Source of the DNA: Bugula neritina
Taxonomy: Eukaryota; Animalia; Bryozoa
NCBI GenBank assembly: GCA_964035545.1
Contig: OZ037768.1
Span: 4,434,741-4,498,740, forward strand
Direction of reading: 5' to 3'
Length of the DNA: 64,000 nucleotides
The notes below the pieces were generated by a model. It was not told the DNA's origin. It worked only from the letters and a program-made list of their open reading frames with translations, and ran no database searches. Positions 24,465-64,000 of the stretch are shown here, in pieces. Position 1 is the stretch's first letter. The number at the start of each line of letters is the position of its first letter. Both the position numbers and the translations under genes were made by a program.

Positions 24465-26292
24465 TTGTGATTGGTCGCTTCTTGGTGGTTCCTGCCGTAG
24501 GAAGTACTCAAGGCTTTGAATATGCTTCTGTCGAGTCCCCAACTGTGATACAGCTACTTCTACAATTGCTGATTCTTTAGTTTGCCATCTCTTTAGTCTA
24601 AATCTATTTATATAGGTTTGTTTAGGTCATGTGCAATAGTGTTCAGAGGTTATTAGTTGGTTTCCTGAGATATTTTTGCAGTCTTTCTTCATGCTAACTT
24701 CTTATAAGCTATTGGTTTTGTCGCCCTAGTCATTTTTTATTCCTATATGATTAAAGATTTATATTTTTCATTTGAAGGCAGAATTATATTTTTTCAGTTG
24801 GCTAATGTTTGTTTTTGTGTGTTTGTATGCAGTTAGAAGAAATTTTGATTCACTGTTTTTTGCATTTTGTAGCGACGCATTTAGTTTTGATGTCTTAGTA
24901 AGCAAACTAACAAATATTTTGAATTTAGCTACTATATTATTAGACAATATTGCAAAGCCAACTCATGTTATGAATGCTACCAACTCCCTTTATAATATTC
25001 CAGATCTTCCATTATGTCTACATTGCTATATAGCTTGTTTTTTTTTTGTACTAATCATGCCTGTAATTAAGATCAAATCTGTAACAAACTCAGAAATTTT
25101 GTGATTCGTTTTTCGTAACGTTTAGACATTTTATTATATAACCAATCCATTGATTCACAATATATCAATTATTATGAAGCATTTAAGAAATAAACATTGT
25201 TGTTGCCAACTGATTCTTGTGTGCATAGAGAGAGTATTTGTATGTTTAGAGAAAGCAATGGATATTTTCTACAGCTACTCTACTGAAAGCATGACACTCC
25301 AGCACTTGATACAAATTACACAGTTAGCTTATAGCTGCAAGTGCAAAATAATAATCTAATTATTTAAATAGGAATGAAGCAGCATAAATTCAACACGAAG
25401 TAGGCTCTAAGCTGTTCAATTCTTTGCATATGAAGGAAATGGGCAATAATTGTCTATTGTCTATTGGTTGAGCATCTGTATTGTATTTCATTATTGACTT
25501 ATTGACAGAATAATAATAGTCTACATTTGGCTGCAGTAAAACACTGCATTAGTTCTAGCAGTTTTACTACAGGCTGGTTGCTAGTCTAATTTTACCTGCA
25601 TTTAGAAAGTTTATTAAATAACACAAGTAAAGACTTTTCTGGTTGAACTGTCAAATTTATTCTGTAAATGAAATATAATATATAACAAAAGCCTTCTAAT
25701 ATAGAGTTACTAGCATCTATCAGCATGGTTTATTCTAAATGAGTATTGGAAGCCACTTAATACCAGGTGGAGGTTGACTGGGGGAAAGCTTTTAATACAT
25801 ACAACTGACTAGATGAGTTAGCAACACAAAGTTTGGCACGTGTACACCCCCTCCCTAGTCCCTACCCATAACCTACATACAAATTAACTAAGTCTCGTAA
25901 ATAAACTATGATGGCCGAATTATAATACAACATGGAGAAATTTTAACAACACACATTACATAGCATGCACATGTATACATAATCTCAAGATAGATTCCCT
26001 GGGGAATATAATAACAAAAAGATATTATAAAGCTTCAACATTGATTTTCCCACACATACACACACATTTAAGTTAGTTTGTGAAGCCTTGAGTTTCATCA
26101 AAAGTTATTGATTAGCTAAAACTGTGTTGGGGACTTCAACCCAATGGCAGAATATTAGTGTATGGTAGTAAAATATTTACTCTGCATATTGGTGAAGTTA
26201 AAAATACTTAATACGAGCTAGGTTTTACTTCACACAAACAATTTGAATATTCTGATATTTTTGTCAACAATTGTTGTGTAAATTCATAGCGA

Positions 26293-27273
26293 TTATAGCT
26301 GTGTGGCGTTTAATGTGATTTCCGGTTGTTGAGGTAGAAACTGTTTCAGCTCACTGAATATCATTGTGAAGAAGAATGGATCTGCGTTAATCTTCAACAT
26401 TTTGTCACTCATCTTGTTGATAATATTAACACAGCGAGTCCAAAACCTGTCTCTGTTGTTCTCTGTTAGGAATGGCTTAAGCGGGTAACTAATTTCATTG
26501 CCCATATATGAGTAGCTAAGATAAAGGCAAGTTAAAACAATTGCTTTCAACTGCTTTTCATCCTCGATACCTTCATCTACAAGATCTCTTAGCAACATGT
26601 ACACAAAAACCAAGTTTGCGGGATTAATAAAGCCAATGTCTTGCCACCCTTGAAATAATAGACTTCTATCTACCATTTTCAGCCAATTGGTGACTTCCAC
26701 AACCTGCAGTCGTTGGATCCTTCTGCATCTTTGACATACAAATACGCCAATACATGTAAGAAGTTCAGACGTTGATGCTTGAATGACTCGTTTCTTAGAT
26801 TTACCGATTGTTCCATTGTTGTTGTCTTGAAAGTTCGCAGGAAAAGTGTCAGATTTTTTGAGCAAGCTAATTGTAGCTTTACCTCGGCAATGAACGACGC
26901 CATTTTGTTTGGCATCTGTTGGAAGAGTTGAGCTGCTTATGTTGCTGCTGTCAGCTTTCTTGTGACTAGAGATTGTAAAGCAGCTGATAGATTTCTCTAG
27001 GCCTGTAGCTGTAGTCACTTTGCTCTCTACATCTTCAGAGCTCTTTGTTATCAGTGAACTTCTTTTGCCTAAACTAGAAAATTTCTTCAAACCGAATGTG
27101 CTAAAAAACACTGGAGGTTTTTTCAATCCATGCGACTTTTTTACACTGCCGTTACTCATATCACTGGCCGATGATAAAGACCCATAGCTGATACCAGAAG
27201 ATGACATACTTGATGGAGTTGATTTGGCTTTATGTAGCTTCTGAGTTGGTGAGACTGATAGCACAGTGCCCAT
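26293..27273 (-). CDS. CDK5R1: Cyclin-dependent kinase 5 activator (p35-like), single coding exon, 326 aa
   Basis: Starts MGTVLS (conserved myristoylation N-terminus). p25 core: [79 protein letters not shown]. The ORF-track start at 27327 lies in a probable 5'UTR intron (27311-27434, GTAAGT...TAG). Confidence 0.97.
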
Positions 27274-27984
27274 CGTTGGTCGACATGCAAGATCTGCACT
27301 TCCTTCACTGCTACACAATATAAACATCGCTTAAAACACACGGTCATGTTTTGTAAAGTTTAAACTATTCCAGCAAAAACTTTAATATTTAATAAAATAA
27401 TTTAAAGTATCAAGTAATTTTATATGTTACTTACCAGCTTATACAAGCGAGATCACCACTTCTTTGGCCTATAGCAAAATGCTAGTAGCAAACAGTAGTG
27501 AAAAGACTGGAATAGGAGTTACTTCATGGCTCTATACACTTGCATTGATTATCTTATCAACACATACAGTATCCTACTGAGAAATTTTCTTCCAATTTCA
27601 GAAATCGAGAAAAACTGGTGGATGAATTGAGATAAGTCAGCATACTAGTTGTAAGCGTTGATAAGATTTGTACTGACTCTCTTTCTCTCTACAGCATGCT
27701 CCAGCTAGCTGCCTATTTAAATAACAGAGGAAAATCAATTTTCATTGATTTTGCATTACACTAGAGTGTAATTATTGAACTGTGGTCTCATACGACAGTC
27801 TATTGGAGTGTATAAAAATGTACACATGTACATTGCACCTATACATATATGATCTTTTTGTTCATTCATTGTTATTTTACTGCATTTTACTATATATTAG
27901 CAAATACTACTTAATAAATGTTTTATAGTCTATACTATGCAGAACGTTTATTACGTAGTATGATTACACTATAGATGCTATATA

Positions 27985-36184: not shown

Positions 36185-39100
36185 ATGGCTGATCATCATA
36201 GAGTGTCATGGTGGAATAAGATAATCATATGCCTGCTTTGCTGCACATTAGCTGCTCAAGGTAAGTTAACATCGTGTGTAGTTACACTTACAACTAATCA
36301 TTTAATAGGTTAAAAGTAAATGTGAAGGTGAAGCAGCAAAGACCGATAAAATCACAATGATAAAATTTCTTGTTTTCTGTCTGTTAACTTGCAGTCATTA
36401 GCAATGGCTGCCACAGCAGTGTGTTGAATAGATATTCGCTAATATTATTGTTAAAAATGAACCTTTTCAATTTGTTGAGTTATTACAAGATGAATAACAC
36501 TTTGCCTGTTGAGATGTATTTATAATATAAATATTATCTTTAAGACTAGAATAATAAGTCGACTTAGTGCAACTTGATGTTGGTGTACCTAATAACTTTT
36601 GAGTTTTGACTTGAAATCCCGGCTTACTAAAAGTCACATAACATTGAATTTGTTGTTAAAGTGTATTAATTTGATCAAGGATTATCCATAAAAATACTAG
36701 TATAATAACGATTATAAACTTTCCAGCATTTTCTGCTAAGTAACGATGGACAAACTTCTTAACAATGCTGATAATTCTAATATCGGAAGCAGTGGGAAAA
36801 TAAAATCAGTATTATTTTGGCTTGTTAACTGTATCAACATTATTAGCATTCATGCAGTATTTTTCATTTAAAACATATATAGTAAGGGAGTGGTTCGAGA
36901 TTGGAGCTGCAGTGCCATTGCAACATTCTGTTGAATAGATACAAGATAGTTACACTTTAGGAACTATGTCTACTGAGTATTTACTTTGGCATCTGTTTTA
37001 ATTAGTTGAGTTCTTCCTCTGTGAGAATAATAAGATTATTAAGTACAGTTTCAACCAGCTACCAGAATGGTAAACCGGGAGGCATATTTTAGCCTGACCT
37101 GTAGTAGTGTTAGTGGATGACAGTTACCATAATAATGCACTGGTTGATCTTACATTGGTTTCCTGTGTTGGTACTCTTGCATAGCATTACTATTATTATT
37201 AAAATTCTCCTAAAGACTCAATGAGACAAATATGACAGCTGCCCTATTACCATGATTTATATTTTTCAGCCAGCCTATTAAAATCATTAAATATTAAGTT
37301 TTATTTGTGATATACAATTGGAAACCATCAGATTAATGGGAAAAGTTCTTTGGAGCATATAGAATGAGATCTGATAAAGCTGTTTATGGTTGAGTTGCTG
37401 GTAAATCGTAGAATATTATGCTAACCTTGAGATAGTCACCATCTTTGTGTGCGGACTTCCCTGTCATCTATTGTTATGTTTGTATACAGCTTTGATTTTT
37501 GTAATTGTTTGACAATGTAATAGTGAGGGAGTGTAGGGTTGCACATGTAACGTGATAGAATTGAGTTAGACGTAGAATTACCAGTTATTTCAGAGCATTC
37601 AACAGAACTATAGTCGAAGTAGTCGCACTGACTAGTGTTGTTGTAGTGTTGTAGGTGGGTACATCATGATAACACTAAAGAGAAACAATAACTTTACTTG
37701 TCTACAATTCAATGCTGAGACACTCAATAATGAGCTAGACAGTTAACTTGATTAAATCTAAAATTATCTGAGCAAAAGAGGTGGACTACATGTTTGCTTT
37801 TCTGAGTTGATACAGAGGCTCTAATGTATATAGTTCAACTAAATGCATAATCCACCAACCATAGAGTATTCTAAAGGGTGATATTTACCAATAGCTAATC
37901 ATTCCTATAAGCCACAACTTGCAGCAGTTTTATAATATATATACACTCGTCAAAAAATATAGGATATTGCTTTTGAGACTTATTGGTGAGATTTATTATG
38001 TGAGTTGACCAGGTTTATTAGGTTGACAAATTTTATAGAGTCTAATTTGAAAATGGCAACAAAGATATTGGGCACTCCCCCTTCTGAAACATATTTTGCG
38101 AATGCTTTCTGAGTTGGCCTAAAATGCTTATTAGAAAATCTTAATCATCTAAATACACTCTTTCATACATAAAACACTACGTAGTTAATTCTTCTTCTTT
38201 TGCTTCTTCAAACCACAAGTATGAATTTCAGTTTTAAACAGTGGCATAACTAACACTGATAAATAAACATTATGCATTGTTGGGTTTGTTTACCAGGCTT
38301 AGCCACTCTACTAGCAAAGCACTGATCCATAACAAGGAATCATCTACTAGGCATCAGTAGGAAAGAGACTTGAGTGCTTAATTGGTTTCATTTTCAAAAA
38401 TTAAACACAATAGTATGTGGTTTGTCTAAACTGTTAGCTCGAGGCAATCAAAAGTCGACTCAATTGGATCAAAGTGATTGTACAGCAGGAGTCCTTGTTA
38501 GTTACTCTTTTCATTTCACATAGTCAATGCTGCCACATTAGGCAGCATGAAAACGTTTTTAACTGTTAGTAAATTTTTACCTTTTATTAGTTGGATTTAG
38601 ATTATAAAAAATCAATAAATAATCCATGTTTTCTAAAGACTGCATCAATTTCTGGTTGGGCTTACTGTACTCATTGCCATCATTATTTCAGTATAAGCAA
38701 GCATACCATGAATTTGATTTGTTATAAAACCAACAAGGCGTGTGGTTTCATTCCACCTGCCACAGAACTCTGTCTGCCCCTTGTTTAACATAAAATATGT
38801 AAATAGAGCATATGGTTTGACATTTTATTTATTTGTATTTATAATCTATATTCTTACAACTATATGTAACTACAGCCTCTACTCATCATTAAGATAAATA
38901 AGTTACAAATAATTGATAGCTCATCTGCTGAGTCCAGCTAACTAATGAGTTTCAAGTCTATACAATGTTTACACCACCTAGTCAGGTGACACTGACTAAC
39001 TAGGAGGCAGCAGGGGTGGCAGGCAGCGGCAGCACCTCATTGTATATGATGCCGGATGCCAATGTTGCCTGTCAAATCTACTATTTTTTATCCAAAAGCC

Positions 39101-42100
39101 ATACTTGGATTGCAGTTGGCCACATATAACTAGATTATGGAGGGGCTGAATTATGCTTTCTCTCTATTAATATAAACAGGCACCTCTTAGTCTATACTGA
39201 AGGTATTTATATATTCTGAGCTGCTATGTAAACATACAGTTTAATACACTGTATGATTATTAGTGACCTGTATACACAAAATCTTCTCCATCTACCACTC
39301 CAGCCATTTCTATATCAATCTAAATCTTTTTGTTCATACTTAAATCATCTTCAACTAATCCAATGCATCAAGCCCCACTCATAATGCAAACCTTCTCTAA
39401 TATTTATCTTTAGTTTTGGCTGGCATTTTAGGAGAGGATTAGTTCATGTAGCATGGATTTTCAACATAGCAGGCTCTGCTATAACAAGTTGTAATAGAAT
39501 ACTTTGCATTCATCATCCAACATAGCTAAGCAATTCACCTCAGCCTTCGTGTCTCTACAAGTCATAATGTAATAAGCCAAAGAATCTTTGACACTCAAAC
39601 ATTAAATTGTTTTATTATCAACCAATGTTAGTCGCTACTAACAGAGGATATAAAAATGGCAGCAATAAAATTTCACATCTATTTATGTTGATGAGAAAAA
39701 GTAATTTGGGAGTCTTTGCCCTCATTTTATGACTCAAGGTATGTCTGGGAGATTTGGTGATAATTTCACAGGAAGCTTACAGAGACATAACGTGATAGGG
39801 TGGACAGAGGTTGACTGGTGATGAATGAACGTGAAGTGCCAGTGGCACATAGCCTCTCCTGTATATAATATTTATGAATAGTCAGGTATTTTATATCACG
39901 AGTCTGACAACTGTTTTGTGGAGCCCAGGGGAATATCTCCTCTTAATTACCGGCTCATTAGGCTCTCATACTAACAATACGGATTTTCAAAGTAGTTAGT
40001 GGTTTCTCAAATCACGCAGACTGTAGGTCTGCACGCAACCAAGTGTCTCTAACCTCTATAAAAACTCATTTGCCAATTATTATCTGTAGTCTAAATTCTT
40101 CAGAAAATAATAATATCGTAATAATAATTTCTTTTAATAACATGAAAATCATTGATGAGCTCTCACGGTTGAAGGGTGAAGAGATAAATAAGCCGATAAG
40201 AATAGCTATTTATAATGTTATTATGTTCCCTACTGACTGCTCTGTGAAAGCTGGAGTGCTTTTCTAGTCTTAGCTCCACACAGTTATTCATTTATTCTAC
40301 TAAATATTAGCCTTGTAGGAAAGGTTGGGGTATTTAGTTTTAATGATCCAGTCTAGGCTTAGAGAGCTGCACTAAGTAGTTTGCCGTTGTGGAAGTGGAT
40401 TAATTACATCTAAACTCCAGGACTCCTGCTTGCTTTTCAAGTCTGCCAGTCTTGTCATTCTACAGTCTACACATTCTATAACTAGAGTTAGATTGCCTGT
40501 TACAATTCTCTAGCACATCTAATACCTCTGAAGATTTCATTACCCTATAGAACTGAAAATAGATGAAATATTGCTTGCTAGGTCTCTCAAATGGATGTTT
40601 TTATGACTTTGGTACAATGGTGTGCGCAATAACCATTGTGTTGCTTGGACCCACACTCAGACTAGGAATGTTATTAGATCCTGTCAAGTATGTTACCAGT
40701 GCGTAGATAGAAAACATCCCGGCAGCGATAAGTCAGCGTCACATCAAACTGCATTGCACTGGCCGATTGTTTTCTTACACACTGTTAGTGCTCTACACAC
40801 TTTCAGTGGCTGATGCTACTGGCTGCATGTATGAAGGTTTTGTGGTCACTAATAGCCAGCATTTAGCTATTGGCTAAGAGGCGGTTAACTTAGCTTTTGG
40901 TCTGCTAGTATTAATTTCTGGTTTCGTGGTTAGCTTGTGTATTATTGTGGTTGTATGTTGGATATGTTTCCTACACGACTTTATGTCTATATGAAATACC
41001 ATCAATATAACTATTATTCATATGTACATCAAATAAAGTTGCAAGCAATCAGTTTTGGGCCATTTAGTTTTGCACAGTGATGATATATTACTTAGCAAAT
41101 GCTTCTACTTAGCAATGCTTTACATGGTCAAACATATATATGTTTTATAGCAGAACCTAAATTATATGAATATGCAGATTGCCATAAATAATAGCTATAA
41201 GCTAAGCTCCAGTATACCAAGTATGCAGGGAATAAGCACATGTTAATATTATATTAATTACAGTCCTATATAGCTGTGGGGCAGGGAATGTACCCTGCAC
41301 TTAATTACTGCACGTCACACTGGAACAGTATTTAAATTAATTATGAATAAATATTATTAATAAGGTTATTAGTATTTTGTAAGTACAGCTTATATTTGCC
41401 ATCTAAACATAATTCCCTGACCGTACATGTATACCACCGATCTATCACCAGCATTTTGTAATCCAGTTCAGGTGTTTAAGTCTAAATATACAGGGTTTAG
41501 TTTCCACCGGGTATGCTTAAATACCCCAGATTATTGTCTTGTACTTGATAACTTCAGGCTTTGCCTCAGTTTTTTGCTGGTTATGAAAAACATCCTGTCA
41601 GTCATGTATGTTGTAATTGGTAAACACCATAATTACTGCAGAATCGGTTCTTCTCTTACTTTATACTTCTCTTCCAGAATTCTTTTAACATGGTTTGGTT
41701 TTTGGTTTATTAAGTTGAACCATTTGCTAGGCAAGATGTAGATGGTTGTATTCTTTATCTTAAAAATACTGGCATGTTTCACAGGTGCTACAAGGTGCTA
41801 CTGCAACAGAGAGGAGTGTAAAGACACACACACATGCCTATCTCTCACAGAAACCTGCTACTCTAAGTTATTCACTGTACATCCACATGAAAACAGCACA
41901 ACACAGACCTCTTCAAGAGACGAGCATGGCTGCGTAGATCTCGTGAAATCAGATATTCCTGGAGGACCAGGTTTGTGCGATGGTAGAGGAGATGTCATCA
42001 AACAGCTGAAGGAGCTGCAACCTCTAATACTCTGTTGCTCAGACACTATGTGTAACTATAGAAGAAATCAAGACATACAAGTAGACCTCATGGACTCCTC

Positions 42101-43768
42101 TGCACCTGGCGTACCTAAAGGTGAGGAAAGCTAGCCTTTGGAGACATCAAGTTTAAATATCGAAAATAGTGGCAATAGAATTGTCAATAACAATTGGCCA
42201 TATTTTTTATCTAATTCTAATCGGCTTATGCATCGGCCACAGACAGCTGCACGAAGAAGACGCTTTAGAGTGCTAATAAATGTAGATATATACTTTAAGA
42301 ATAGATAACTCAGTGCTCACTGCTTATACAATATTCTGGCGACTGCTTAAGCCCTTATGTACAGACTAGTGAGTGTACATAAGTTATCAAAAAGAATTCA
42401 TTGCTTACACAGCCCAGTAATCTTGCATTGGTTCAAGGGATTATACTTATGATGGTGATGTATAAATGCTGTCTTATCTCCCAACCCGAGTGTTGAGGTT
42501 GAGACCTGAGCTACTCATATCTCAGTCCTAATTAGCAAAGATAATGATATGTGCATCACTTATCCTCCAATACTGAGTCATAATAACAAAGCAGTTTGGT
42601 AACCAAGTCCCACGAGTTTTAGAGCAATTTCAAAGAGATAGCCATCTATTTGTATAATAATATTATATATATATATAATTATTAGGAGCATACAAATTAC
42701 ATAAAAATATGCAACAGAAAGGCAATGGAGCTAGTTTAGACTAGAGTGTGCGTGTTAATATTATTACACGCTGGCTCCTAGTTGTTGTCTAGCATTGAAT
42801 GACTTGTGTTGTAGACAAAGTATTAAATTCACATTAAATCTGTATGCATAAGATATAAAGTGAATTTAAAAATAACAAAGAATGGCAGATGTATTAGTTC
42901 TACATTATAGTTATTGTTAAGAATGCAGTAAGATGATTTATTACACAAAAGCCCTGCCTTGTGATTTTATTATATTTCTACATGTACTGCATCGTGAACT
43001 TTTGGAACAAAAAATCATTTTTATCTATACAAAACACGTTTGCTTTTTAAACATGAGTATACTTTGTGATATGCAAACTATGGACTGTATCGGTTCATTG
43101 CACCGGTGCGTTACCTATATAAGTCTGTTTGCTTTCCATAAAATACGTAAGAAGCTTTCAACTTTTTAGAAGCCTAATCAGTTATACATACATTTCTATA
43201 TTACATCATATATTAAGCATAAAACTTGTAAGAATATGCATGAGACTATCGAAATGTATATCTTAAATTATTGTTTTATTTTACAGCACAATCTTCTAAA
43301 AGTTTAGACAACACGGTAACCGCACCTGAATCAGAAGCTGCTAGAAAAGATGAAGACGTTATGTTTCAAGCAGCAGTTATTGCAGTGCCAATAGCTGGTG
43401 GTCTAATCTTGGTTATTCTCATCCTATTGGCTGTTCGAATGCTGCGAGAAGATTACAGAAGGTCTGACAGTCACAGAGGACTAGTAAAAACCAGAAACTT
43501 TATAGAACAGCATTTCGTTAGAAAAGACGAGAAGAAAACTCATAATTATAATAATTCTCACCTGTTGGCGAATATAAAAACAGCAGAGCATACAGTAGCT
43601 CCTGTCCACCACAAACACTGTAGAGATCAGTGGTCAGAAGTGAATGAACGTCTCGTCGGAGAAGACTACAGGGGCTCACAACTCCCATCCAGCCCCAGCA
43701 AATCAACTGTAAAAGTGTCTTTACTGAACACTGCGACTTTGGAGCAACCAAGTCTAACTTTAGTATAG
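36185..43768 (+). CDS. BAMBI: BMP and activin membrane-bound inhibitor (pseudoreceptor), 3 exons, 297 aa
   Basis: Exons 36185-36260 (signal peptide MADHHRVSWWNKIIICLLCCTLAAQ, GTAAGT donor), 41785-42120 (RCYCN...HGC...CCSDTMCNYR) and 43287-43768. The TM signature FQAAVIAVPIAGGLILVILILLAVRMLR closely matches vertebrate BAMBI (FRAAVIAVPIAGGLILVLLIMLALRMLR). No kinase domain. Confidence 0.95.
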
Positions 43769-44945: not shown

Positions 44946-47438
44946 ATCTCACAAATATATATAACTATGTTTTGTAGTAGCTAATAATACTGAACCAAAT
45001 AATGGTAGTATCATGCATTGAAAAATTACAATTACAGTTTTACATTTTGAGTTGTCTGTCCATATATGTATCACTACTGGTAGATAGTGTAGACAACTTT
45101 TAATATAGCTACCTCTCGCTATTGAAAAGAACTAGCCCACATGGCTTGCATGCATAAGAAGGCCTTTTGGTCAAAATAATGTGTGATAATTTTATTATGA
45201 TAGACCTTCAAAATAATTTAAAAGATGTTAGGTAAACATATTTACAAATTTCTGTTTTCTCTATATGACATATTATGGTTGCGTGTGTTTTGACAATAGA
45301 TCACTGCAATGAAAATGGTAAATTTGATTTCATTATTGCTCCAGTATAATTATACCAATAGTATATATAATATTATATTCACATTTCAAAACTATAATAT
45401 ATGTACAAAAATATATTTATTGTAACATATTTGAAAATGCTGTTGCTGTTTATCATGAGATTTTAAGTTAATGACAACAGCAACTTTTATATACTATTCT
45501 TACAGTCAAGTATGATGTATTGCAAATGTATATTCAGCAATGGCTGTAATCATCAATCATATTATATAGTTGTATACATGTATAGTATATTTATAGCTTA
45601 TGTTTTTCTTAGTTGTCCTGTATTGGCAACTGACTTCATCTCATTACATTATGTAATTTACAAGTCTCTTTTTGTATTCATCCTTCAATGAAACTTCGTT
45701 GAAGGTTACTGAGTGCCATCAGTCAACTTTTATTTTGGTAGAAAATGAAAAAGATCGAGGTTGAAAATTCCTAAACTATACAACAATTATCAAATGGGAG
45801 CCTGGTTATGTCAATAAGGCATTTTCCTTATTTATAATGAGCAGAAAATAGAATGTTCAATAATTGTTTACTAACTATAGTGTTGAGAAGCAGGGCTAAT
45901 ATTTTGTTCCTCAATGGTCACATAACTCCTACACAGTTAAAAACTATTCCTTTCATAATATTTTTCCTATAAGCCTAATAACAGAAAAAGCTTCAACATC
46001 TTTCACTGGCCCTGCTTTAAGCATGCATAAGCCCTATGCTTATCCTGACAAAGTTAATTGTTTGAGGCTGCACTAAGCAATTATGAGACTTGTTTTTAGA
46101 AATAATAAGGTATATATTTATATTAAGTATATAATATATATTATATTGATTATATACGTAATATAACAGTTTGTTATGTTACTATAGGGATTTGAAGCTT
46201 CGTTTTACAGAATAATTGATGGTGATGAAAATGTATCAATATAATTTACTAATTAGGTTTATTTATGGCTCTTTTATCACTTGATATTTTTTTTCAGTAA
46301 TATACGGCCATAGTTTGAGTTTGAAGTAAGCAGGTCAGCTAGTTTTGAATAACCTTGTATAATATAGCATATTACTTATTTGGCAAAGTATGTTATGATA
46401 AATTATTCTGGAACCAACGCACAAACTACCAAACTGCTTATTTTTACTAAAATGGTCAAACAACAAGGCTGGTGAGCCACAAGAAAATCATCTTAGCTAG
46501 TGTATATTTGCAAGCAAGAATATAACCTATTTATAGTTGTGATTTAGGCATTATTTATATATATAACTGTATTGATGCAAGTTGTGAGAATTCGGTTTAA
46601 AGTAGTAATCAGAAATAAATGTGAGAAAATAACAGAATTGAAGCACAGGAAATTTTACAATAGTATCAGTCAAAAAATATATATCTATAACTTTTTGTAA
46701 TGTATATAACTAATAATAATACAATGAAAAATATAGTTAGATAAAATGCAAAATAAGTTAAAAATCAAACATTAATATTATATTACTGAAATTAAAGTGA
46801 AGTATAATACAAATTTATTTATTACATATTAGAGTAAAAATAATCCAAAAAGAAAGATTTCATAATTTATATCATAGTCAAAAATATATTTTGTACTATA
46901 AAAGTTATAAATCTCCCATTCATAGAATAATGACTGCTAGTACTGATTCATTTGAAATAGCCTACAATATAAATTTTAACTATATATGTTTCAAGGTTAC
47001 AATCAATTCGACTTTTTTTACTCAAATATATAATAAAGAAATGAATATTAACAAGAATATTTTGATATACTGAAACATTTCAGTTTAAATCAATGTTTAT
47101 AAAAAAAGCGTATAACAGCTAGACAAGATGGTTAACAAAAAGGCATATGATGTTATTAGATTAACATAGAGTAAGTATTTAAACTAATGAATTATCGTCA
47201 TACAGTTGCTGCATCTAGTTTTTAGTAAAAAAGATAGAATACAGAAAATTGAATAAAATGGCAGCTGCATTACTTTGACCTTTGAATACAGCAAACTGAT
47301 TGTCGTCAAAAATGAGCTATAAAATTGTTCAAACTGATCAGGCAGCAGAAGCCATTGTAGTGATTGCTGACTAGCACGAGAAGATGTCATTCAGTTGTCC
47401 ATTTATGTAACTTCTACTAAATGAAGAAAACCTCTATT

Positions 47439-50400
47439 TTAAGGCACATCATAGTCAGAGTTAAAGCTATTAGAGCTGAGTTCATGACATATAAGTGTAG
47501 ATTCATAGGGCTCAATGAGAGACGGTGTTACGGCCCCCTTTCCACGCTCCATTGTTAATAAATGTGACATTTGTGCTTTGCTACTCAACATCTTTTGCTG
47601 GATTATCCAACTTTTGCGGGACGTTGACTTTTTTCTTCTATAAACCCAAATTTTTATGATGACTAAAATTGAGGCTATAACTACTAAAATGAAGACAATC
47701 ACAAGTACTATTAGCAATAAGAACACTAGACGTAAGGTGCTGCTGTACTCATCGTCTGCTATCAAGTTTGATCTGTGTTCTTGTATTCCATTTAATGATA
47801 GAGTTGTCTTATCATCCAGTCTGGCAGATGGGTTTATATTCAAGTTTGTAGTTATCTCACCAGTGTCTACAAAGTTAGCAAGTTTCTAAAACTGAGATGA
47901 GAACATGGGGGGCAGATAAGTGTCTGCCTCTCAAAAACTTGTATATAAAACTGATGCCAATTTGAGGCTAACACAAAATAGTTGTCTTTTATATTTTTCA
48001 ACTTTTTTACTGTTGGTACTTTTATAGCAATAATTCACTTTAAAGAACATAACATAGGAGTAGTAACTTTATTTTATACTTATGTTTTCTAATATAAAAT
48101 AGATATTTCTATCAATAGGCCTATATAATTTATATAGCCAGATTAAAGAAAACTTTCATGCACATTCTGGTACCAATATTTGTTCTATGCCTGATACATA
48201 ATTTACATTAACTTTTATTATTGAATGTATGAGAGTTTATTCAAATCTATCATTACTGATAGTGCTAGATGCATACTATTATTCATTGATGCAATTTGCT
48301 CTTAATTTTTAACTCTTAATTCCAAAGTGCAATTGCGATTAAAATGCTTCTGTGTCAATCATACATCAACTAAATAAACAATAAAATCCAGACATACCTC
48401 GCATAACTTCAGGAGGCAGCGTCAGGTTCTTGTTACACAACTCCGTGTAGCAGCATTCGGTGTGAGGCCACTCTGAGGTGAACAAAGTCGGCTTCAATCT
48501 GGAGCTATCACAGAGTAGACCTGCTTTTACACATCCCATTGTGATGTGGGGTTCCATCTGTAAGAGAAAGATATACATGGCTTTATAAAAGATTTTAACT
48601 ATGAAGAGTAACATTACTAAATACAATTAATAAAAAAATATTCTACATACGAGTTCAATTTACTAAAATTTAGTTATTATTATATTAAATATAAATAATG
48701 ATATAGTTAACTTGGAATTATATTATTTTATTTTGATGTTATTTTATTAAAAAAAGTATTCAATAGTATCAACTATCATAATATAAGTATTATAATAACA
48801 TCTAGCATAGTGCAACATGTTGAAATGCGTAGGTATCTTAGCCAGTTGTCTTGTACGAACTTATTTTTGACATCTGAAATGCCACAGCAAGAAAAAATAT
48901 GATATATTAAGTGGCATGATATGCAAAGATTTTTAGACCAATCAGCTGCAACTAATTATTAAGGTGATGTGTGCAGCTAGGCTGTTGCTTAATAACCCAT
49001 TTTAGGTTTTTATGGCAGGTTTATTTGAGAATATACTATGAGCGTCTGCTTTGTACCATAAACTTGCAGAAGGCCTTCTTTCTAATGTAGATATGTATGT
49101 ACAATGTATATTATTACTAATAGCATTGTTTGCACAACTGCGCCAATAGCTGCTGTGAGTTACTGTATTCCAATGGAGGGGTCAGAGGTCAAATGGTGGT
49201 GTCCCCCATTAATAAATACATTAAAGAAATATTTTTATTTAAGTCAATTAGTTTAATTACATTCCTAATGTAATTTCTCCAATGCCCCAACTGCAATAGA
49301 CAAGTAGGTAGAGTAATTCTTTAACAATGCTTTCAGCTGATAACCTATTTGGTAATTATCTTACCATGTATTCAGTAACCCAGTAGGAAAGAGCTATGGT
49401 CCCAAGGACCAGGTGAACAAATAATGGCATTGTTTCTACCCATGGCGTTATATTTTCTAGGGCATATTGTGTGAGCCCTCCTCAATAAAACATGGATACA
49501 TATGCTATATAGAAAGTTAAGCAACCATGCTTTTTAAAGTCGGTTTATATTGACAAAGTTTAATTACTGCGTAGTAGTGCGCTGTACGGAACTTTGCATA
49601 TGGAAAATAAAACATATAAACAAAATTTCCCTCCCATACTGTGAGAATATGCTTTGAAATTTCTATTTAATTGAATTAGTATATAGAGTTAAAGTAATAC
49701 TAAAACCAATGCAGTTTATCTATTAGAAAAATGGAAGTAAATGCAATTGATTTACTTTTTTAATTATGTAATTCAACGACAGTACACATTAATTATCATT
49801 TTAGAATTTTTGTTGATTTCTGAAGCCATTATTTTTTTAGGTATCGCAAAAGCAATATGCTGGCCTGTTTCTACTGTCAACGCGTAATCCAATCAGTATG
49901 CAAAATTATTCATAAAAACTTCAGCTGGTGACTATTCTTTGTTTGCATTAGGATTATAGAAATATCAAAATTTCAAATCTATTTACACGAAACATTAAGC
50001 TTGTGAAGGATTCAGATTTTAGTCCATCTTCAGAGGTATTAAGTCCAACTGTCTACTCATCAGACACAAAGTTATACCAACTAAGAGACTAAAAGCACTG
50101 TGCCACGCACCAATAATCATGCATGTTAATGAGACTCTGTTGCTGGAATAACTAATTATTAAAAGTGAAAAGTTCAATAGTTTTTGTCATAACCTTGAAC
50201 ATGGGAAAAAGAAAATCAGATAGTTCAGTCAATAAGGAATGGTATTGAATTATATTGCTGTACTGATTCTATCAGTGTCCAACATTTGAATCAGAATGAA
50301 CAACTTTTCATGACAAAGAATATTTATTTTTGTCAAACTGGTCTTGATATTATCAGCCTAATCTCAATAAAATTACAGTTATTTTGTCTCTAACTGTTGA

Positions 50401-53400
50401 CACTAAATGAACCACAAGCCTTGCCAATCTTGGTCTAAACTCTAGTTTGAGCCAATTCACCAGGTAACCAGTAATTCTCTACTTCAAACAGATGAGTTGA
50501 TCAATAAAGAGACTCTGTGGTAGAAGATTGGTGATAATAAACCATGTGTTGACTGCTGATGGTAGAGATAAGCATTGCAGTGTTACAGCACTAGAATGTT
50601 TCCTCCAACCACCTATAGGACTGTCCACCAAAGCCATTTAGGAGCAGTAGTAGAGAAATTTAGATAGTTTAAGTTCTTTAATTTTTTTGGAATCTTGGTT
50701 TTGGGTCGAGGGTTAAAATTTTTGCAAGAGCGTAGCTTCCTTTGCTACATTTCATAATGTCTAGCACAGCTCACTGGATAATTACTATAGTAGGTAACTG
50801 AGAGGTAGGTGGAGTAATGGAGAAACTGAGAAAAGCCTGTGTTTCTAGATAAGAAATGTAGCATAAGAAGTTATGTTCAGAAAACTTCAATTTTGCACCT
50901 ATCTTGATAAACTTCAACTCACCCATGAATATAACATAGCAACATGCAACTAACTGGAGATTATTCTAGATAGTTAAAAGCAGCAACTAACCTTGGAGTA
51001 GTACTGTTTGTAGCACCCAAGTTCAGGCTTATCTTGGACACACATATTGGACCGTTCTTCACTCAAACACTTTTCCTCTGTGCAGTAGCACGTCAAGGAT
51101 TCTAAAAAAACAAAGTTTGCACTCTTTATAAAAAAATACTGACCCTGCTAATTAATGCAAATAATGTAGACTAGTACAAATGTAGTTCTGTTGAGTGCTA
51201 GAATAAAGCAAAATTGAAAAGCTCAAAATCCAAACTCTAAACTCTATACCAACAAATATATGTTCGAGAATTGCAATATAAGTTTTTATGAAGAGATTGT
51301 TTTCTATTAAAGTCAAAATTTACTAGTATTTTGGTAATTCATGTCCATTTTTTAAATGTTGTGGTCAATATCTTTACCAGCTCGATTGGGCAACTAAAAG
51401 GAGTTGAAATAAACACCACTGCAATATTTGCTTATCCTTTTCATATAAAGCTGCAGTAGATATTTTCAAGCCTTAAAAACATTCTTTTTAAATTTCTTCG
51501 GTTTTACTTGCTTCCAAGAATGTTGCTGTTTATGGCTCACACTAATTCAATTAATTCTATGATTCCCTAAAATTTTCAACAAATACGTTCAGCTATGGGC
51601 TCCATCAGAAAATAAAGCTCTGTTGAGATTTTACAAGTTAACTTCATTGCTTGAAGATCATGTTAAACCAGAGTTCACAGAGCTGATAGATCACTTTAGT
51701 AAAGCGATTAAAAATGTATTAAAATGTAAGGCTGCTTAAAATACTACATAAAGTGAATTGTTTTAAAGTAATACTGTGCAAATTTACTCCCACATAATCA
51801 GTAATCTACTGTAGGAATAATTTTGTACTAAAATGGCTGAAGGTAAAATCCTGCCCTTTTAATTGGACTTTAAAGAGGATTAAAGTAAACAGCAGTGCAC
51901 TGGTTTGCTCTACTCCACAGCGCTGTAAAACCTTCTGGCTTAGAATGATGAGGCAGTTAAAAAGTCGGGCTGTACTAGCAATAAACTGGTTTACAACATC
52001 TAAAAACAACAGAACTAGCTGTATAACATAAACAACCTAATAAAAAGTAATTATTTATATCATCTCAAATGTTTGATGGGATAAAAATTTGATGTCTTCA
52101 GAGCGTTGCCTACTTCTGCAGTTATGATTAGGAGTAATGAGTTTACAAATAAGCAGCCCAACATTTATTGCAATGGAATAAGCTTCATAATGCCTGACTC
52201 TGACTACCCAATGTTTATTGTAAGAATGTCTATCTAGTTGTTGTTTGTATAGCACTGGAGCCTACAAGCTGCTGGCATTCCTCCACTCATTACTGAACTG
52301 CATTTCAATAATTAATCATTGAACTGGTGGTAGACTTAGCATTGTTATGTTCCACCACGCCTCTTGGCTCCTCCAGTTTGAATATTTCTAATTTTTGTCT
52401 ACATCCTGACACTCCCCAAAAATTCTTTTTTGATTGCAATTATTAGTTATTATTTTTTGTTATAAAAAGTTTTAGCAAAGGGAATAGTATTGCAAAAAGC
52501 CGAATTGCAGAGGAATTTGGAAAAAAAACTTTGTTTAAGAAGTTATGTTCTCACAAAATCTTCACCAGCATTTTGAACCCATATAAATTTAGGTAATGGA
52601 AAATTATAGAATTCTGAACTTTTTCTGCTAATGCAGGAGAAAACAAAATTTGTATTTCTTTTGGCACGCTACAGTGCTATTAACAACCAGACAGCTGATG
52701 CTTTGTGCCAGTTGGTAATGAAATTAAAATCAACCCTCAACAATGACACTTTGCACTATAACCAACGTAATCCAGGTTGAAGTTGAAATATGCTAAATAC
52801 TTCATAGTGTTTATGAAAACAGGATTTTACGCATGGATAGACTAAATAACAGGCAGTTGATTTTTATTGCAACTTCATATCAGTTAGGCTCCATTTTAAT
52901 TGGCATGTTTCATTTATGATTAGTGGAGTTGACAATTTTTATTAACTTTATTGTTTGGTATTAGTCTGCAGTAGAAAATAGTACAGAGGACTGTCTGCTA
53001 GCCTGAATGCAGAGCCAACAGATTGAGGTGGATGTCTACTATAAATGCTTGACTTTGTCAGCTGTCAGCTGCTCACAACTGCTGCCGATTCACTAACACA
53101 TATCCTTTCTCTGTCAGCTATCCTTTCTATGCTGTTATTCCAGTCAAACCCTTTACTTATTGTCTGATTTTAGAAGATCTTTCGTCAAAACTCAGAAATA
53201 TTGTTAATTTTGATCGCAAAAAGAACTGCAGTTTGAAACCTGCATAACTTATTTTCAGCTACACTAAGCCATGAATAATAGATGATACTTGAAGAGAGAT
53301 AAATTTGATTATAAGCTGATCCTGATAGCAACAGCCACCTTTATAATTGAAACAAAATTGTTAGTTCTGCCAATATTAGGGAATATTATTGAAAATCAAT

Positions 53401-55810
53401 ACTTTTATCAAAATATTTTTTTCGATTTTGAAACCATACTCATCAGTTTTACATGTTTTCCCTCATGAGTAGAGCTACAACTCAAAACCATACAAAGAAC
53501 TTTGCTTTTATAAGAATACAAATGGCTTTTTGCTTAGCCTTTAGAGCTTAGAGCCATGACATGACAAAAAACTCCAAAAACATAACATAATGAGTTGAAT
53601 AAAATTTCTGTCATAACAGAATGTCTGACACCAGCATGCAAAATTGTTCAATTAGAGTTACATACGCAGTTAGAATGGTGCTTGAACTTCTAACAGTCTA
53701 AAATGTATAATATATATGCATACTATTTATATAATACCAAATATTTATGGAATATGCAAATTTGATCCAGGGCCTTACATATGGCCTCAAAACCATTTCG
53801 TAAATCACACAGCAGTTTCTTCACTGTAACATGCACTGTATTCAGCTAGTTCATTATCAGACAAACTGTACTAAAAGACTTGAAAAACATAATATACTGT
53901 TAATAAATAATTCACCATTTCCCTGAGTGAAACCTCTAGAAAGGATTGTCTTACAATTACTAAATTAATCTAAACAGTATTATTTGGAAGTTGTAGGTAC
54001 ATGATTATGTATATGTAGTACATGCATTTGTATATTCTCTTACTATGTACAGTATCCTCCTTGATTATAAACATATTTATAATAACTGGAATACATATGT
54101 GCTACCTAAGACTGTACCTTGTAATGAGAATAATAGCAGCTGTAAATTAATAACACTGATTAATAAATGTTAATAAAGGTATTGAAGTTTTGCAAGTTGA
54201 GTTATGTAACCTATAATCTGGCTTGCAATCTAGCAGCTTCACTAGTAACATTCTACTTTTTGCCTTACTTTTTAATCAGCATAAGAAGGGTTAGAAACTT
54301 GAAGCATTGGCATACAATACATTAGACTAATATTGTATATAAATTAATTGTAATACCTGTGTTTATATTAAACTCTGTACTGTAAGTTCTTCTTTATTTA
54401 ATTATTGAACCTGAGGTGCAGATAAAGTGTGTTCTCATGATATGATAAAATTAATATTTAGTAACCGCTGAAATCTGAGCTAGCTAACCTAACTTCCATA
54501 TTTGATATACCTTTGTTTTTTGAAGATATCAAATGACAGATGCACATTAAAAGATGATTTTTTCACACAGCTAAAGGCAGATTTCAAGCTGCCAACCACA
54601 TATGTTGAAATTTCTCAACTATAGTGAATCATTTAGAGAAATGACAGTCTATAGTTCAACACACTGAAAGAAATAGAGCCTATTTCGGTGTTGTAGTCTG
54701 CAATACTGTGCTACAAATATACTGCATGCAATACTGTGCTACAAATATACTGCATGCAATACTGAGTCACAAATATACTGCATGCAATACTGTGCTACAA
54801 ATAAACTGCATGCAATACTGTGTCACAAAGATACTGCGTGCAATACTGTGTCACAAATATACCGCATGCAATACTGTTGTTACGAATATACTGCACACAA
54901 TACTGTGTCACAAAGATACTGCCTGCTACAGATAACATGATTATGCAGTTTCTAAATTGCAGCAGTGAAACTAAATACTTTGGTTTATCAAGTTTGACTA
55001 AATGTGTCTATATTTCTATGTCCTATGCAGGCAACTAGCAGTTCAACAATCTATTGGATTATGCTCACAATAAAATATTCAAAATAAACACTTGAAGCCT
55101 TATCATTGTCTTATCAGACCCTTAGAAGGCCTTCTTCCCCTCTCATATATGTTTGCCAAGGTCTGGGATTAACATAAATAATGTAAACAATGCAAAGCCC
55201 CACTGCACATATCTTACAGTAACTTACTGTACCTGATGTTACCTATCCTTTTATTATCTCCAATAGTAACTTACTATTACTCCTGGTGTTACCTATCTTT
55301 ACGCTATTCCTCTTTTACATGCGCCCTATTTTTCTATCATGTGACTTTTCAGCAACATTATATAACCGACCCCCATTATATTTTTATCATATATATTATT
55401 TTATACTTGTAACTACTCAAATAGAATATAATATATACTTGAATCAAGATTATGTTTGCGAAAATACATAATATATATTCATGGGCAGTCAAAACCCACT
55501 ATAGCAACTTGCATGCATTTCTTATAATAGTTTCTTTGCACAATTAAATTTACTCAAACTTGGCATCATTTAAAAGGCGTTGACTAACTTTCACCAAAAA
55601 ACCTAAATTTTCTTGTATGCATGCAGTTTTACCTTTACAATAATGAACTACAAAACATCGCAATGGAACCTTGTCTGTAAAATAAGACTATCTATTCCAC
55701 CATAAAGTAGTTTCTATCTTAGCCGTACACTTACCACACATTGTTAAAGTGCATAGCAATATTGTCAGGCAGTATAAACACCGTATTAGCAGTTCCATTT
55801 CTTTAGCCAT
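47439..55810 (-). CDS. Kinase-less TGF-beta/BMP type-I-receptor-like (activin-receptor ectodomain) single-pass membrane protein, 4 exons, 257 aa; BAMBI-like architecture but not a BAMBI orthologue by TM sequence
   Basis: Exons 55810-55735 (signal peptide MAKEMELLIRCLYCLTILLCTLTMC, GTAAGT), 51101-50992 (ESLTCYCTEEKCLSEERSNMCVQDKPELGCYKQYYSK), 48557-48398 (MEPHITMGCV...LCD...ECCYTELCNKNLTLPP) and 47866-47439 (stalk, TM LVFLLLIVLVIVFILVVIASILVII, ~70-aa tail, TAA). All GT-AG with phases 1,0,1 consistent. Ten ectodomain cysteines with a CCxxxxCN knot. Confidence 0.85.
54700..54927. repeat. 28-bp minisatellite (GCAATACTGTGCTACAAATATACTGCAT)n, ~8 copies
   Basis: CAATAC recurs at 54701, 54729 and onward. 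Confidence 0.9.
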
Positions 55811-60190: not shown

Positions 60191-60352
60191 AAAGGTACCG
60201 TACCTTATCTTAACCTTGACATGTAATGTAAGTGTCAAGGCTGCAGTATTATTTTTGGGTTTTTACACTCACACTCGCTCACTGTAAGCATGTTTTCTTT
60301 CTGAGCATCGTCATCTGTTGTCCTTAAAATATTTTTTTAAGTTGACAACGCT

Positions 60353-63300
60353 ATGGCTGAATGTTCGATATGCCATAGTGTGCTATCTCCACCATATATT
60401 AAGTGTGCAGAGTGCGTATTTTTATCAGCCGTTCAATTTGAAACTGACTATCATTTTGACTTTGGCCTCGAAGTTGAAAACGAATCATTCACATTGTCGA
60501 GTATCACTATTCAGGATGAGAATGGGAATTCAGGTGACATTGAGAATCAGACCAAGAATAGACACAAATTAAAACGTCGAAATGACTTTAATGCTACAGG
60601 GCCATTGCTGTTATCATTATCACTATCAGCCTATGAGGATGACGCCAGTCAGATGGAAAATCGGGCTGAGCCTGGTTATAATCATAATGATGATGGTAAG
60701 ACTCTCTAAGAATCCTGAGAGTGAGACCAATTCGAAGACTTAGACTATTAATTAAAAGTAGGTTAGACTGAAAAACTGACGTTTTATGGTAAATAATAGT
60801 GACACTGACAGTATAACTATAAGTAAACGCAAGTCTCAAACTCGGAGTGAAAACAAAAACACAAGCTAATAGAAAGCAGTATGACTCTGAGTAACGTAAA
60901 GTGAAAATGGTATTTGCCTTTATGTTTAAGATTCAACTAAACTGTGTTAGTATGAGTAGGACTATGAGTACTAGTATGACTATGATTTTAAGTGTAAGAT
61001 TAAATATATTTTTAATTGCCATTGCTGTCAATCATGCCCATAGTAATCAGGATGTTGTTTTAAACTTAAAGTACATGGCTGTATACTGCTAGCAGTATGA
61101 TAAACAAATATTTGTAATAAAGATCACCATGGTTATGATGGAGTTTTGCAATTAAATATTTTTGAACATTTAAATAAATGTTCAGTTCAAATATTTTGTA
61201 TTACAATTAATCTTATTCGTAACCATAATGTTTTTTGACTTACACTTAACTTAAAATTGATATATTATTGTAGGATTAATAGCCACAACTTTACCTTGTT
61301 CAAAGTTTGTTTTCACTTCGAGTTTATTTATATATACTTACACTTACAGATACATAATATTATCATAATGCTGCTTTTTTAAAGTTTGATATTTTTTTAC
61401 TGTAAATTATATATTATGAAATTAAGTCTATAGTTTCTCTATCTTATAGTCTTTAAGTGGATCTCTGTACGTGAGAGCAGATGCTGTAACTTTGCAAGGT
61501 TTGTTTTCAGATTTTCAAGAACGTAAGTTTACTACCAAAAAAGAAGAAACAGAGTTAACAAGTTTCCTCATTTGTCTTGCCTGTTTCAGCTGCTCCAAAA
61601 CTATTGGATTACATGATGCTAACCACGATTATGAAGTCATTGTAAGTAAGTTAAAATCTAGCAGGTAGGTAAATCTGCCAAGTTTGGAGTATATACAGAG
61701 CCAATTGAGAAATACACACATTTCCCACAGTTGTGTGCCGTAGAATTTAACTTCAAATTTGTTTACTACTTTGCATCTTTTTTAAATTATCTTATTTTTA
61801 TTAATTACTGTGACTTTAATCAACACTTTTTAATCAAAGCTGGTTACTGGGTTACCAAAGCTTTGAACAATAAATAATGACTTCAAATGATGTCTCTTAA
61901 GTCAGTTGACACAGTTCTAGCTGATTAAACTGTTCTCAAAACTGAAGTATCATTTCAAACATTAAGAAATTTGAAAAATGGACAATTTAAATTTTGCTTC
62001 AAACGTTCGTATTTTACTGCAGAGAGATGATTTTTGTGTTGTTCCGGGATCAAAATGGTCTGCTAAAGAGGAGTTGAAACTTCTGGAATGCATTGAATCC
62101 TGTGGCTTAGGTAACTGGTAAGTGAAGCACTGATAAATAAAGTACAAGTAAATGAAATGCTGGTACATGAAGTGTTAATAGGAGTCACTGAAAGTTGCCC
62201 CTTGTACTTTAGCTCTAAATGTCTACCAATATAACAAAGGCAATGAGAGCCAGTTTCTTGTAATGAATCTTATTACTGAGTATAACTCTGTCTGTTTGCA
62301 TTTTACCTTTATTTAGAATCCTTTAGACATTTCCATTACTATTCAGTTTAAATTCAATTTCACCCCTGCGTAGAGGATGTATTATGGCAACAGATAGTAA
62401 TAAAAAGCTCCTAGATTTGTTTGTGTAGCAAGTTATTGGGGTTTTATGCTGTGCGTACCCACATTTTTGCTACTAGTTTCTACTCTTTCTATCACTAGAG
62501 GTTGGCAGCATGTGCAGTATCATCTCCCCATTCGTACAACAGCAGCGGGTCACAAGTCATCAGTATTTAATTATTTTGTTGACAGGTCTTCTATAGCAAC
62601 ATATCTTCCCGGCAGAAGTGCTAGGGAGTGTGAGAAACACTACAGCTCTGTCTTCCTATCAGTAGACATGATATCCTCAACACCAGGTGAGTACATAGTC
62701 TAGACTCTAGTACATCTACACTTGGTATACTATATGTGGATATAGTCTAGTACATCTGTACTTGGTATACTATATGTGTATATAGTCTAGTACATCTACA
62801 CTTGGTATACTGTATGTATATATAGTCTAGTACATCTACACTTAATATACTGTATGTGTATATAGTCTAGTACATCTACACTTGGTATACTGTATGTGTA
62901 TATAGTCTAGTACATCTACACTTGGTATACTGTATGTGTATATAGTCTAGTACATCTGTACTTGACTCTCTTTCTCTCTAACAGGTCTGAGGGACATGCC
63001 TGCTACTGGGTTAAGAAGGCCTATTCCATATAAGCATGTAGGTGAGTATACAGACACCATTTCTGCTGCCTTCTACCCTTTTATTATATCATGCCTCATC
63101 TCTACGTCTCTATGCAAATCTAAGCACAAAGCCTCATGGTTTGAAAAGCTTTAGGAGTTCACTACTCTGATATTGGCCTTGGTTATGCAAGAGCTTTGGA
63201 CTTGATTTTAAATATTGCTGCTTCATAAAATTACTTTTAGAAGTGTTTAGTAGTTGTCTATCCTCTGTATACATGTGTAAACAACTCCGTATCCTGTATT

Positions 63301-63860
63301 TCAAGTAGAGTGAATAATATTAATTGTGATGTTGCATACAGTTAGCAATCTACCTCCGAGGCCAGCCGTAATGTCTGCTGCTTACAACGAGATATCAGGC
63401 TATATGGCTGCTAGGGGAGATTTCTCTACTGAACACGACAACCATGCTGAGCTCATTGTCAAAGATATTGACTTCACTAAAGAAGCTGAAGGTGATTTGC
63501 ATGATATTTTAGATGATCAAAGAGGAAATACTACAGTTAATAAACAACGTTTAGTCCAAAATGGATGCGCTAAAATTAAATTAGATTTCACGTGACCTGC
63601 TTTTTTATAAAATTTTAGTATCACTGTGTGTCAACCTGTGTTACAATTTCATTATCATGTTTTTATTGCTTTTACTTTAGTAAACAGAAGTTTTCAGTTT
63701 ATTAATTTGCTGTTTACTAACTTTCATTCTAAGCTCTATTTGAGTGACTAATAAGTTCTGTGTGCCCTTCAGTAGAAGAGGTTGAAGGTCACATGGATCT
63801 CTGCCTAGCTCTGGTAGATATATACAGGTTCAGGGTCTTAGAGAGGGAAAGGAGGAAAAG
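60353..63860 (+). CDS. TADA2A: Transcriptional adapter 2-alpha (Ada2a; ATAC complex), 5' part; gene continues beyond the window
   Basis: Exons 60353-60695, 61511-61641, 62023-62117, 62586-62686, 62985-63041, 63342-63491, 63773-63860. ZZ finger (CSIC..PYIKCAEC..FLICLACF..HDANHDY), SANT domain (WSAKEELKLLECIESCGLGNW..ECEKHY), PPRP, GYMAARGDFSTEHDNHAE, ALVDIYRFRVLERERRK. PYIKCAEC and PPRP favour Ada2a over Ada2b. Confidence 0.88.
62701..62964. repeat. 40-bp minisatellite (TATAGTCTAGTACATCTACACTTGGTATACTGTATGTGTA)n, ~6.5 copies, filling TADA2A intron 4
   Basis: TATAGTCTAG recurs at 62741, 62781, 62821, 62861, 62901 and 62941. Confidence 0.95.
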
Positions 63861-64000
63861 GTATCTAATTTTCTTACTACCACAACACAAAATATCTTGT
63901 TACATCTTTTTGCTATTTTTTATTAAAAATAAAATTCATAATCCAATTAGCCGGCTACCAGCAACAGCTCATATAATTTATGCTAGCTATTAGTAGTAAT

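Follow-up and report, generated by a model that had tools for sequence, protein, structure and literature searches.

A BAMBI-linked, kinase-less three-finger membrane protein of bryozoans as a possible second pseudoreceptor in TGF-beta-family signalling

To our knowledge, BAMBI is the sole recognised transmembrane pseudoreceptor of its design, in which a signal peptide and a ten-cysteine three-finger ectodomain starting C-x-C-x4-C are followed by one transmembrane segment and a short tail without a kinase. Its mechanism has been reviewed (PMC6895975, PMC7175140), and in Bugula BAMBI is known and expressed in the larval blastemas (PMC3133996). Among the spiralian BMP genes surveyed in a 2026 paper, a single bambi is listed for Membranipora and likewise for Bugulina, and the bryozoan BMP pathway is depicted with many duplications and losses, as unusually remodelled (PMC13121700). 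Here we analyse a gene sharing this design, called below the kinase-less gene, which lies beside BAMBI in a 64,000-nucleotide stretch of the Bugula neritina genome (C4:4434741-4498740, hereafter the window; the genome searched comprises 216 Mb in 321 contigs). Its product, a conserved protein that crosses the membrane once, has a three-finger ectodomain and a fixed C-terminus and lacks a kinase, and the gene is linked to BAMBI. We tentatively favour the reading, to which we give slightly less than even weight, that it is an old bryozoan-restricted tandem duplicate of the adjacent BAMBI with a rebuilt transmembrane segment and tail, acting as a second pseudoreceptor that damps BMP/activin signalling.

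The gene has four predicted coding exons on the minus strand (774 nt, i.e. 257 aa and a stop), which are joined across GT-AG introns of phases 1/0/1 without internal stops. The predicted protein comprises a signal peptide, the ten-cysteine ectodomain, a stalk, one transmembrane segment and a tail of 67 aa. The cysteine spacing is 1-4-8-8-15-6-18-0-4 (counted on an orthologue and identical in the window protein), and the ten cysteines are split five and five over exons 2 and 3. The features of the gene are as follows:

55735..55810, minus strand: coding part of exon 1, with the ATG and the signal peptide; 76 nt, i.e. 25 codons and 1 nt; phase-1 donor
50992..51101, minus strand: exon 2, 110 nt, Cys1-Cys5 (C-x-C-x4-C-x8-C-x8-C); phase-0 donor
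48398..48557, minus strand: exon 3, 160 nt, Cys6-Cys10 including the CC-x4-CN box; phase-1 donor
48516..48518, minus strand: Leu two residues before Cys7, invariant in 5/5; the BMPR1A Phe85 "knob" position by cysteine register only
47439..47866, minus strand: exon 4, terminal coding, 428 nt including the TAA; variable S/T-rich stalk, transmembrane segment and tail
47643..47729, minus strand: transmembrane segment, strongly conserved among the relatives; the AVIAVPIAGG signature of BAMBI is absent
47556..47573, minus strand: tail motif Q-x-x-x-L-L, with Leu-Leu invariant in 11/11; candidate dileucine sorting signal
47442..47453, minus strand: C-terminal [FY]-D-V-P, with DVP invariant in 11/11 and a stop immediately after it in each locus read

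An earlier note on this DNA had joined four exons over 8.4 kb into a protein of 257 aa, and we recovered the same exon ends, GT-AG introns and open frame; its order of signal peptide, ten-cysteine three-finger ectodomain, stalk, transmembrane segment and tail also holds, the tail of about 70 aa being 67 aa when counted. It had seen no kinase exon downstream, in agreement with our six-frame motif scan, which found no TGF-beta-receptor kinase motif anywhere in the window, including the 47 kb downstream of the gene. In eight sequencing runs, probably of RNA and belonging to four studies, 5-7% of the words of 45500-51400 are present, a stretch of which the coding exons make up 10%; this is compatible with expression of the gene, without demonstrating it. 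In the genome, the exon-3 search found the gene as a single copy outside any Ly6 cluster. The window protein carries a 12-residue insertion after Leu-Leu (47525-47555, minus strand), otherwise present only in the near-identical P0001/L007, and its intron 1 holds at 54700-54940 an imperfect tandem repeat of about 23 nt, recognised by eye; several introns of a neighbouring myosin gene hold similar simple repeats.

Queries were the single exons and, for the whole domain, the database orthologue P0006. Searches with exon 4 yielded eleven relatives, one of them full length. RefSeq contains an uncharacterized protein of the cheilostome Watersipora subatra, XP_067933966.1 (241 aa), with an identical four-exon layout and identical phases, which has 78% (exon 2) and 60% (exon 3) identity to the window protein and the same C-terminus. 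Since this protein shares the four exons and their phases, the kinase-less gene is not a chance open reading frame. Exons 2 and 3 were recovered in three more species from metagenome assemblies (L033, L035 and L038), the first exon being 73 nt long in L033 and 79 nt in Watersipora. Amino acid identity to the window in these four species is 66-78% for exon 2 and 47-60% for exon 3; in the same comparisons synonymous sites approach saturation (pS 0.70-1.05) and pN/pS is 0.16-0.45. Judged by these substitutions, the ectodomain is under purifying selection.

The eleven aligned exon-4 sequences have a strongly conserved transmembrane segment and an invariant Leu-Leu, and all of them end with [FY]DVP, directly followed by a stop codon (TAA in the window) in all loci read. 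The tail is conserved and measures 54-68 aa across the family, and a basic stop-transfer stretch is present. The disrupted orthologues that the earlier note had allowed for did not occur; the orthologues are intact. The remaining profile matches (P0013-P0016) are long proteins matched by hydrophobic stretches only, the two that were scanned being a cadherin-like and an SRCR protein. At the L037 locus, a 966-aa reverse-transcriptase open reading frame (5988-8888, minus strand) occurs about 1 kb upstream of the last exon of the orthologue, probably inside its last intron, and exons 2 and 3 were not found in the 10 kb upstream. Ectodomain searches, which were word-limited and less sensitive for short cysteine-rich domains, found no homologues outside probable bryozoans, and no published description of the gene was found in the literature searched, the coverage of which is incomplete.

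The kinase-less gene adjoins a complete three-exon BAMBI on the plus strand:

36185..36260, plus strand: BAMBI exon 1, signal peptide, 76 nt
41785..42120, plus strand: BAMBI exon 2, entire ectodomain; Pfam BAMBI E 1.5e-7, above cut-off
43287..43768, plus strand: BAMBI exon 3, transmembrane segment and tail; Pfam BAMBI_C E 1.7e-15, above cut-off

In the window these genes are arranged tail to tail, with 3.7 kb between the end of BAMBI and the stop of the kinase-less gene. The same pair is tail to tail in L033 (1.1 kb apart), whereas in Watersipora BAMBI begins 7.8 kb downstream on the same strand, i.e. head to tail. The linkage is present in three species (the window genome, L033 and Watersipora), and the different orientations suggest a local inversion in one lineage. 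Tandem duplication is suspected chiefly because the linkage outlasts both the saturation of silent sites and this inversion. The C-terminus of the window BAMBI (43745-43768, plus strand) is T-L-V, of the class I PDZ-binding type, and the L033 BAMBI frame ends otherwise.

Gene structure and ectodomain pattern also bring the two genes together. Intron 1 is of phase 1 and lies 4 codons upstream of Cys1 in the kinase-less genes of five species and in both bryozoan BAMBIs seen (signal exons of 76 nt in the window and 70 nt in the second), while the distance is 5 codons in the BMPR1 of the same genome and about 12 in one of its ACVR1-like genes; the phase of the stalk intron matches as well. That both signal exons in the window measure 76 nt is a coincidence of this species and was discarded as evidence. 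The spacings C2-x4-C3 and C7-x18-C8 and a Pro four residues ahead of the CC pair are common to the kinase-less gene and both BAMBIs, and C7 and C8 are 13, 16 and 9 residues apart in three type I receptors. BAMBI gave the exon-2 profile its best scores (14.7 and 10.8 bits), with p values of 0.010 and 0.038 relative to cysteine-fixed shuffles, uncorrected across 14 comparisons. In the Atlas feature search with the transmembrane segment and tail, two BAMBI clusters came out on top (0.77 and 0.76), a result of lead level only. The earlier note had called the protein a separate pseudoreceptor, which is not established: the BAMBI linkage, the site of intron 1 and the length of loop 3 favour a diverged BAMBI duplicate.

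Other observations weigh against descent from BAMBI. The Pfam models BAMBI (PF06211) and BAMBI_C (PF19337) match neither the exons, nor the database orthologue P0006, nor the alignment members; as the earlier note had said, the protein is not BAMBI itself, the true BAMBI being its neighbour. Profile-profile comparison with the bryozoan BAMBI gave low probabilities (exon 2, 32%; exon 3, 2.6%; transmembrane segment and tail, 0.8%), and the exon-3 profile favours the cysteine boxes of type I receptors (own BMPR1, p 0.002, likewise uncorrected; ALK4 in PDB, E 0.003). The kinase-less gene has an additional phase-0 intron in loop 2 and thus four coding exons instead of three, whereas in both BAMBIs the ectodomain lies within one exon. 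BAMBI's CNY is absent, the C5-C6 loop is much shorter, and the C6-C7 loop, which bears the ligand hot spot, has 6 residues versus 13-14 in the two BAMBIs. The transmembrane segment lacks AVIAVPIAGG and the tail has motifs of its own (Leu-Leu and the [FY]DVP end); this missing signature and the intron inside the ectodomain had both been pointed out in the earlier note and were seen again. The kinase-less gene, unlike BAMBI, was found only in probable bryozoans. Moreover, LU-domain genes in general have a phase-1 intron behind the signal peptide (PMC6600238), so the position of intron 1 is a weak character. The likeness of the transmembrane and juxtamembrane region to BAMBI or ACVR1 was lost in shuffling controls and is discarded. 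As to origin, the sequence points three ways: the first half of the ectodomain to BAMBI, the cysteine box to the type I receptors, and the intron within the domain to Ly6.

Type I receptors (ALK1-7; Sax, Tkv, Babo) resemble the kinase-less protein in the C-x-C start, the CC-x4-CN box (near to that of ALK4/BMPR1), the stalk and the single transmembrane segment. In BMPR1A the sequence Asp84-Phe85-Gln86-Cys87 contains Phe85, a hot spot of BMP-2 binding (PMC2946932), and the invariant Leu of the kinase-less protein falls in its register, an equivalence drawn from the cysteines only. The protein differs from these receptors in its 6-residue C6-C7 loop and in the lack of the GS box and kinase, and the intron positions are unlike those of the three genes inspected in the same genome. 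This genome harbours seven receptor-like kinase loci (four type-I-like, three type-II-like), all elsewhere, the nearest being 7.7 Mb off on the opposite strand. Because BMPR1 and two ACVR1-like genes own separate ectodomain exons, and the ALK4/5/7-like gene owns a transmembrane exon, the kinase-less gene is not a front part split off from one of these receptors. The type I genes at C2:19.21 Mb (L009, L020, L027) and C1:24.76 Mb (L021, L028) have kinase L45 regions that look ALK1/2 (ACVR1)-like by eye, the latter without a match to the GS-box model, and acvr1 was not found in two bryozoans examined elsewhere (PMC13121700). Since this genome has these two ACVR1-like kinase genes, we rejected for it the idea that the kinase-less gene is what remains of a lost ACVR1. 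The type-II-like loci at C1:2.39 Mb, C4:12.17 Mb and C5:13.10 Mb (L022-L024) are BMPR2-like, ActRII-like and one further, as read from kinase exons only.

The Activin_recp score (PF01064) is below the cut-off of 20.9 bits for exon 3 (16.9) and for P0006 (15.0), a weak test because the model also missed the true receptor exons of the same genome, where its search returned one integrin-beta false match only. The Atlas model is nearest to ACVR1-like/TGFBR1-like structures (TM-score 0.68, versus 0.62 for BAMBI and 0.59 for Ly6/Quiver), with a mean pLDDT of 0.54 and with differences of 0.06 that do not discriminate. AlphaFold models of the P0006 ectodomain had pLDDT 41 (single sequence) and 37 (shallow alignment), both unusable. 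That the ectodomain is specifically type-I-like, as proposed in the earlier note, is not established: Activin_recp stays sub-threshold, and BAMBI or Ly6 would match the C6-C7 and C7-C8 distances and the loop-2 intron too.

These comparisons bear on several other explanations. An independent pseudoreceptor could have arisen from a type I duplicate (of the BMPR1, ACVR1 or ALK4/5/7 class) that shed the exons for the GS box and kinase, acquired a short tail and became a natural dominant-negative receptor; the outcome would be as in the favoured reading and the origin different, in line with the earlier note. The affinity of the cysteine box to ALK4 and the own BMPR1, the hydrophobic residue at the knob position (absent in BAMBI), the nearest structures of the Atlas model, the transmembrane start HP-x-VFL resembling one ACVR1-like gene, and the two ACVR1-like genes, which indicate that receptors did duplicate here, all speak for it. 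However, the lasting adjacency to BAMBI would have to be chance, the mid-ectodomain intron is unlike that of BMPR1 (just before C7) or of the ACVR1-like genes (just before C5), the transmembrane similarity to ACVR1 is within composition (p 0.17), and the structural evidence has the low confidence and the small score gap given above; we regard this origin as unlikely. Less likely still is the more specific proposal that TGF-beta pseudoreceptors of a second class evolved independently of BAMBI and clear a specific bryozoan ligand by endocytosis via their own tail motifs. It is highly improbable that the gene has decayed, that it is an artefact of the assembly, or that it represents the front half or a short isoform of a receptor with a kinase: the junctions and the 3' end do rest on prediction from genomic sequence, but this explanation is largely refuted by the stop right after [FY]DVP in every homologue, and the identical end of the RefSeq orthologue, the purifying selection, the lack of a kinase motif downstream and the remoteness of the seven kinase loci all contradict it.

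Ly6 proteins usually begin with C-x-x-C, and type I receptors and BAMBI with C-x-C; a short C6-C7 and a long C7-C8 spacing are Ly6-like, as in CD59. The kinase-less protein has such spacing and shares with Ly6/uPAR/Quiver proteins the ten-cysteine LU pattern ending in CN and a domain encoded by two exons split at loop 2; the intron lies between C5 and C6 in the kinase-less genes of five species, and the tip of loop 2 is the archetypal intron position of LU genes (PMC6600238). Two bryozoan genomes contain about 41 three-finger proteins each (PMC13719153). The protein could then be a transmembrane-anchored Ly6/uPAR-type three-finger protein outside TGF-beta signalling, e.g. an ion-channel modulator or a junction protein, as the sub-threshold Activin_recp score and the similarity of the Ly6/Quiver models would also permit. 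We consider this improbable: the C-x-C start is that of type I receptors and BAMBI, the internal intron is of phase 0, a true transmembrane segment with a conserved cytoplasmic tail stands in place of a glycosylphosphatidylinositol anchor signal, the gene is BAMBI-linked and single-copy outside Ly6 clusters, and the UPAR_LY6 and QVR profiles gave no match even at E 10 (E 1 in the P0006 scan). By the features examined, the protein is neither a type I receptor nor a typical Ly6 protein. A positive TGF-beta-family co-receptor, which would hold or present one ligand or route complexes to signalling endosomes, appears about equally doubtful. One fixed partner would fit the conservation of exon 2, which exceeds that of the BAMBI ectodomain in the same species pair (71% vs 62%); the inhibitory tail of BAMBI type is absent, and co-receptors without a kinase are known that act in either direction, e.g. 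Cripto and CD109 (PMC7175140). Nevertheless, BAMBI, the known transmembrane protein of exactly this design, inhibits, and no sequence feature indicates a positive role. Whichever the origin, a negative role in TGF-beta-family signalling is rather probable.

The mode of action of the kinase-less protein would most plausibly be BAMBI-like, although the lack of a BAMBI/BAMBI_C match and of the transmembrane signature and the additional intron set it apart from BAMBI; the decoy activity is deduced from anatomy. The ectodomain would enter complexes of a BMP/ADMP/activin-type ligand with type II receptors in place of the type I receptor. Such a complex would hold a dead-end subunit unable to phosphorylate Smads, because the GS box and kinase are absent. 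The Smad7-linked mechanism of BAMBI is probably not copied, since the tail is unlike that of BAMBI and has the invariant Leu-Leu and the [FY]DVP end; profile comparison with shuffling controls found no likeness between the two tails beyond composition. In most exon-4 sequences a Gln occurs four residues upstream of Leu-Leu, an arrangement which we take to recall the non-acidic dileucine signal of CD4, as a candidate only. This resemblance suggests adaptor-driven internalisation, and the tail may thus act as an endocytic sink clearing ligand or receptors from the surface, which we consider more likely than the Smad7 route. YDVP was also considered as a phosphotyrosine SH2 site and rejected, because Phe replaces Tyr in 8/11 sequences.

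Three other genes were recognised in the window. An intronless open reading frame at 26296-27330 (minus strand), CDK5 activator (p35/CDK5R)-like by eye, is the first clear gene that follows downstream on the minus strand. The plus strand carries a myosin with class I features and a Myosin_head match at about 9500-24500, and TADA2A/ADA2 at 60341-64000.

On present evidence, the kinase-less gene is a lineage-restricted variant of a known design, represented in RefSeq without a name or an assigned function, and not a new kind of system. Its reach is limited, as the family is seemingly confined to one lineage, the design is already known and the function is deduced. Given that one bambi is listed per bryozoan (PMC13121700), the gene would fall outside current inventories of BMP genes. 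If a second class independent of BAMBI were true, the kinase-less decoy would have arisen twice in animals, with both forms retained side by side. If the protein is inhibitory for BMP/activin, bryozoans would gain an extra conserved regulator in an already remodelled pathway, and the gene would provide a natural test of whether a decoy requires the tail of BAMBI.

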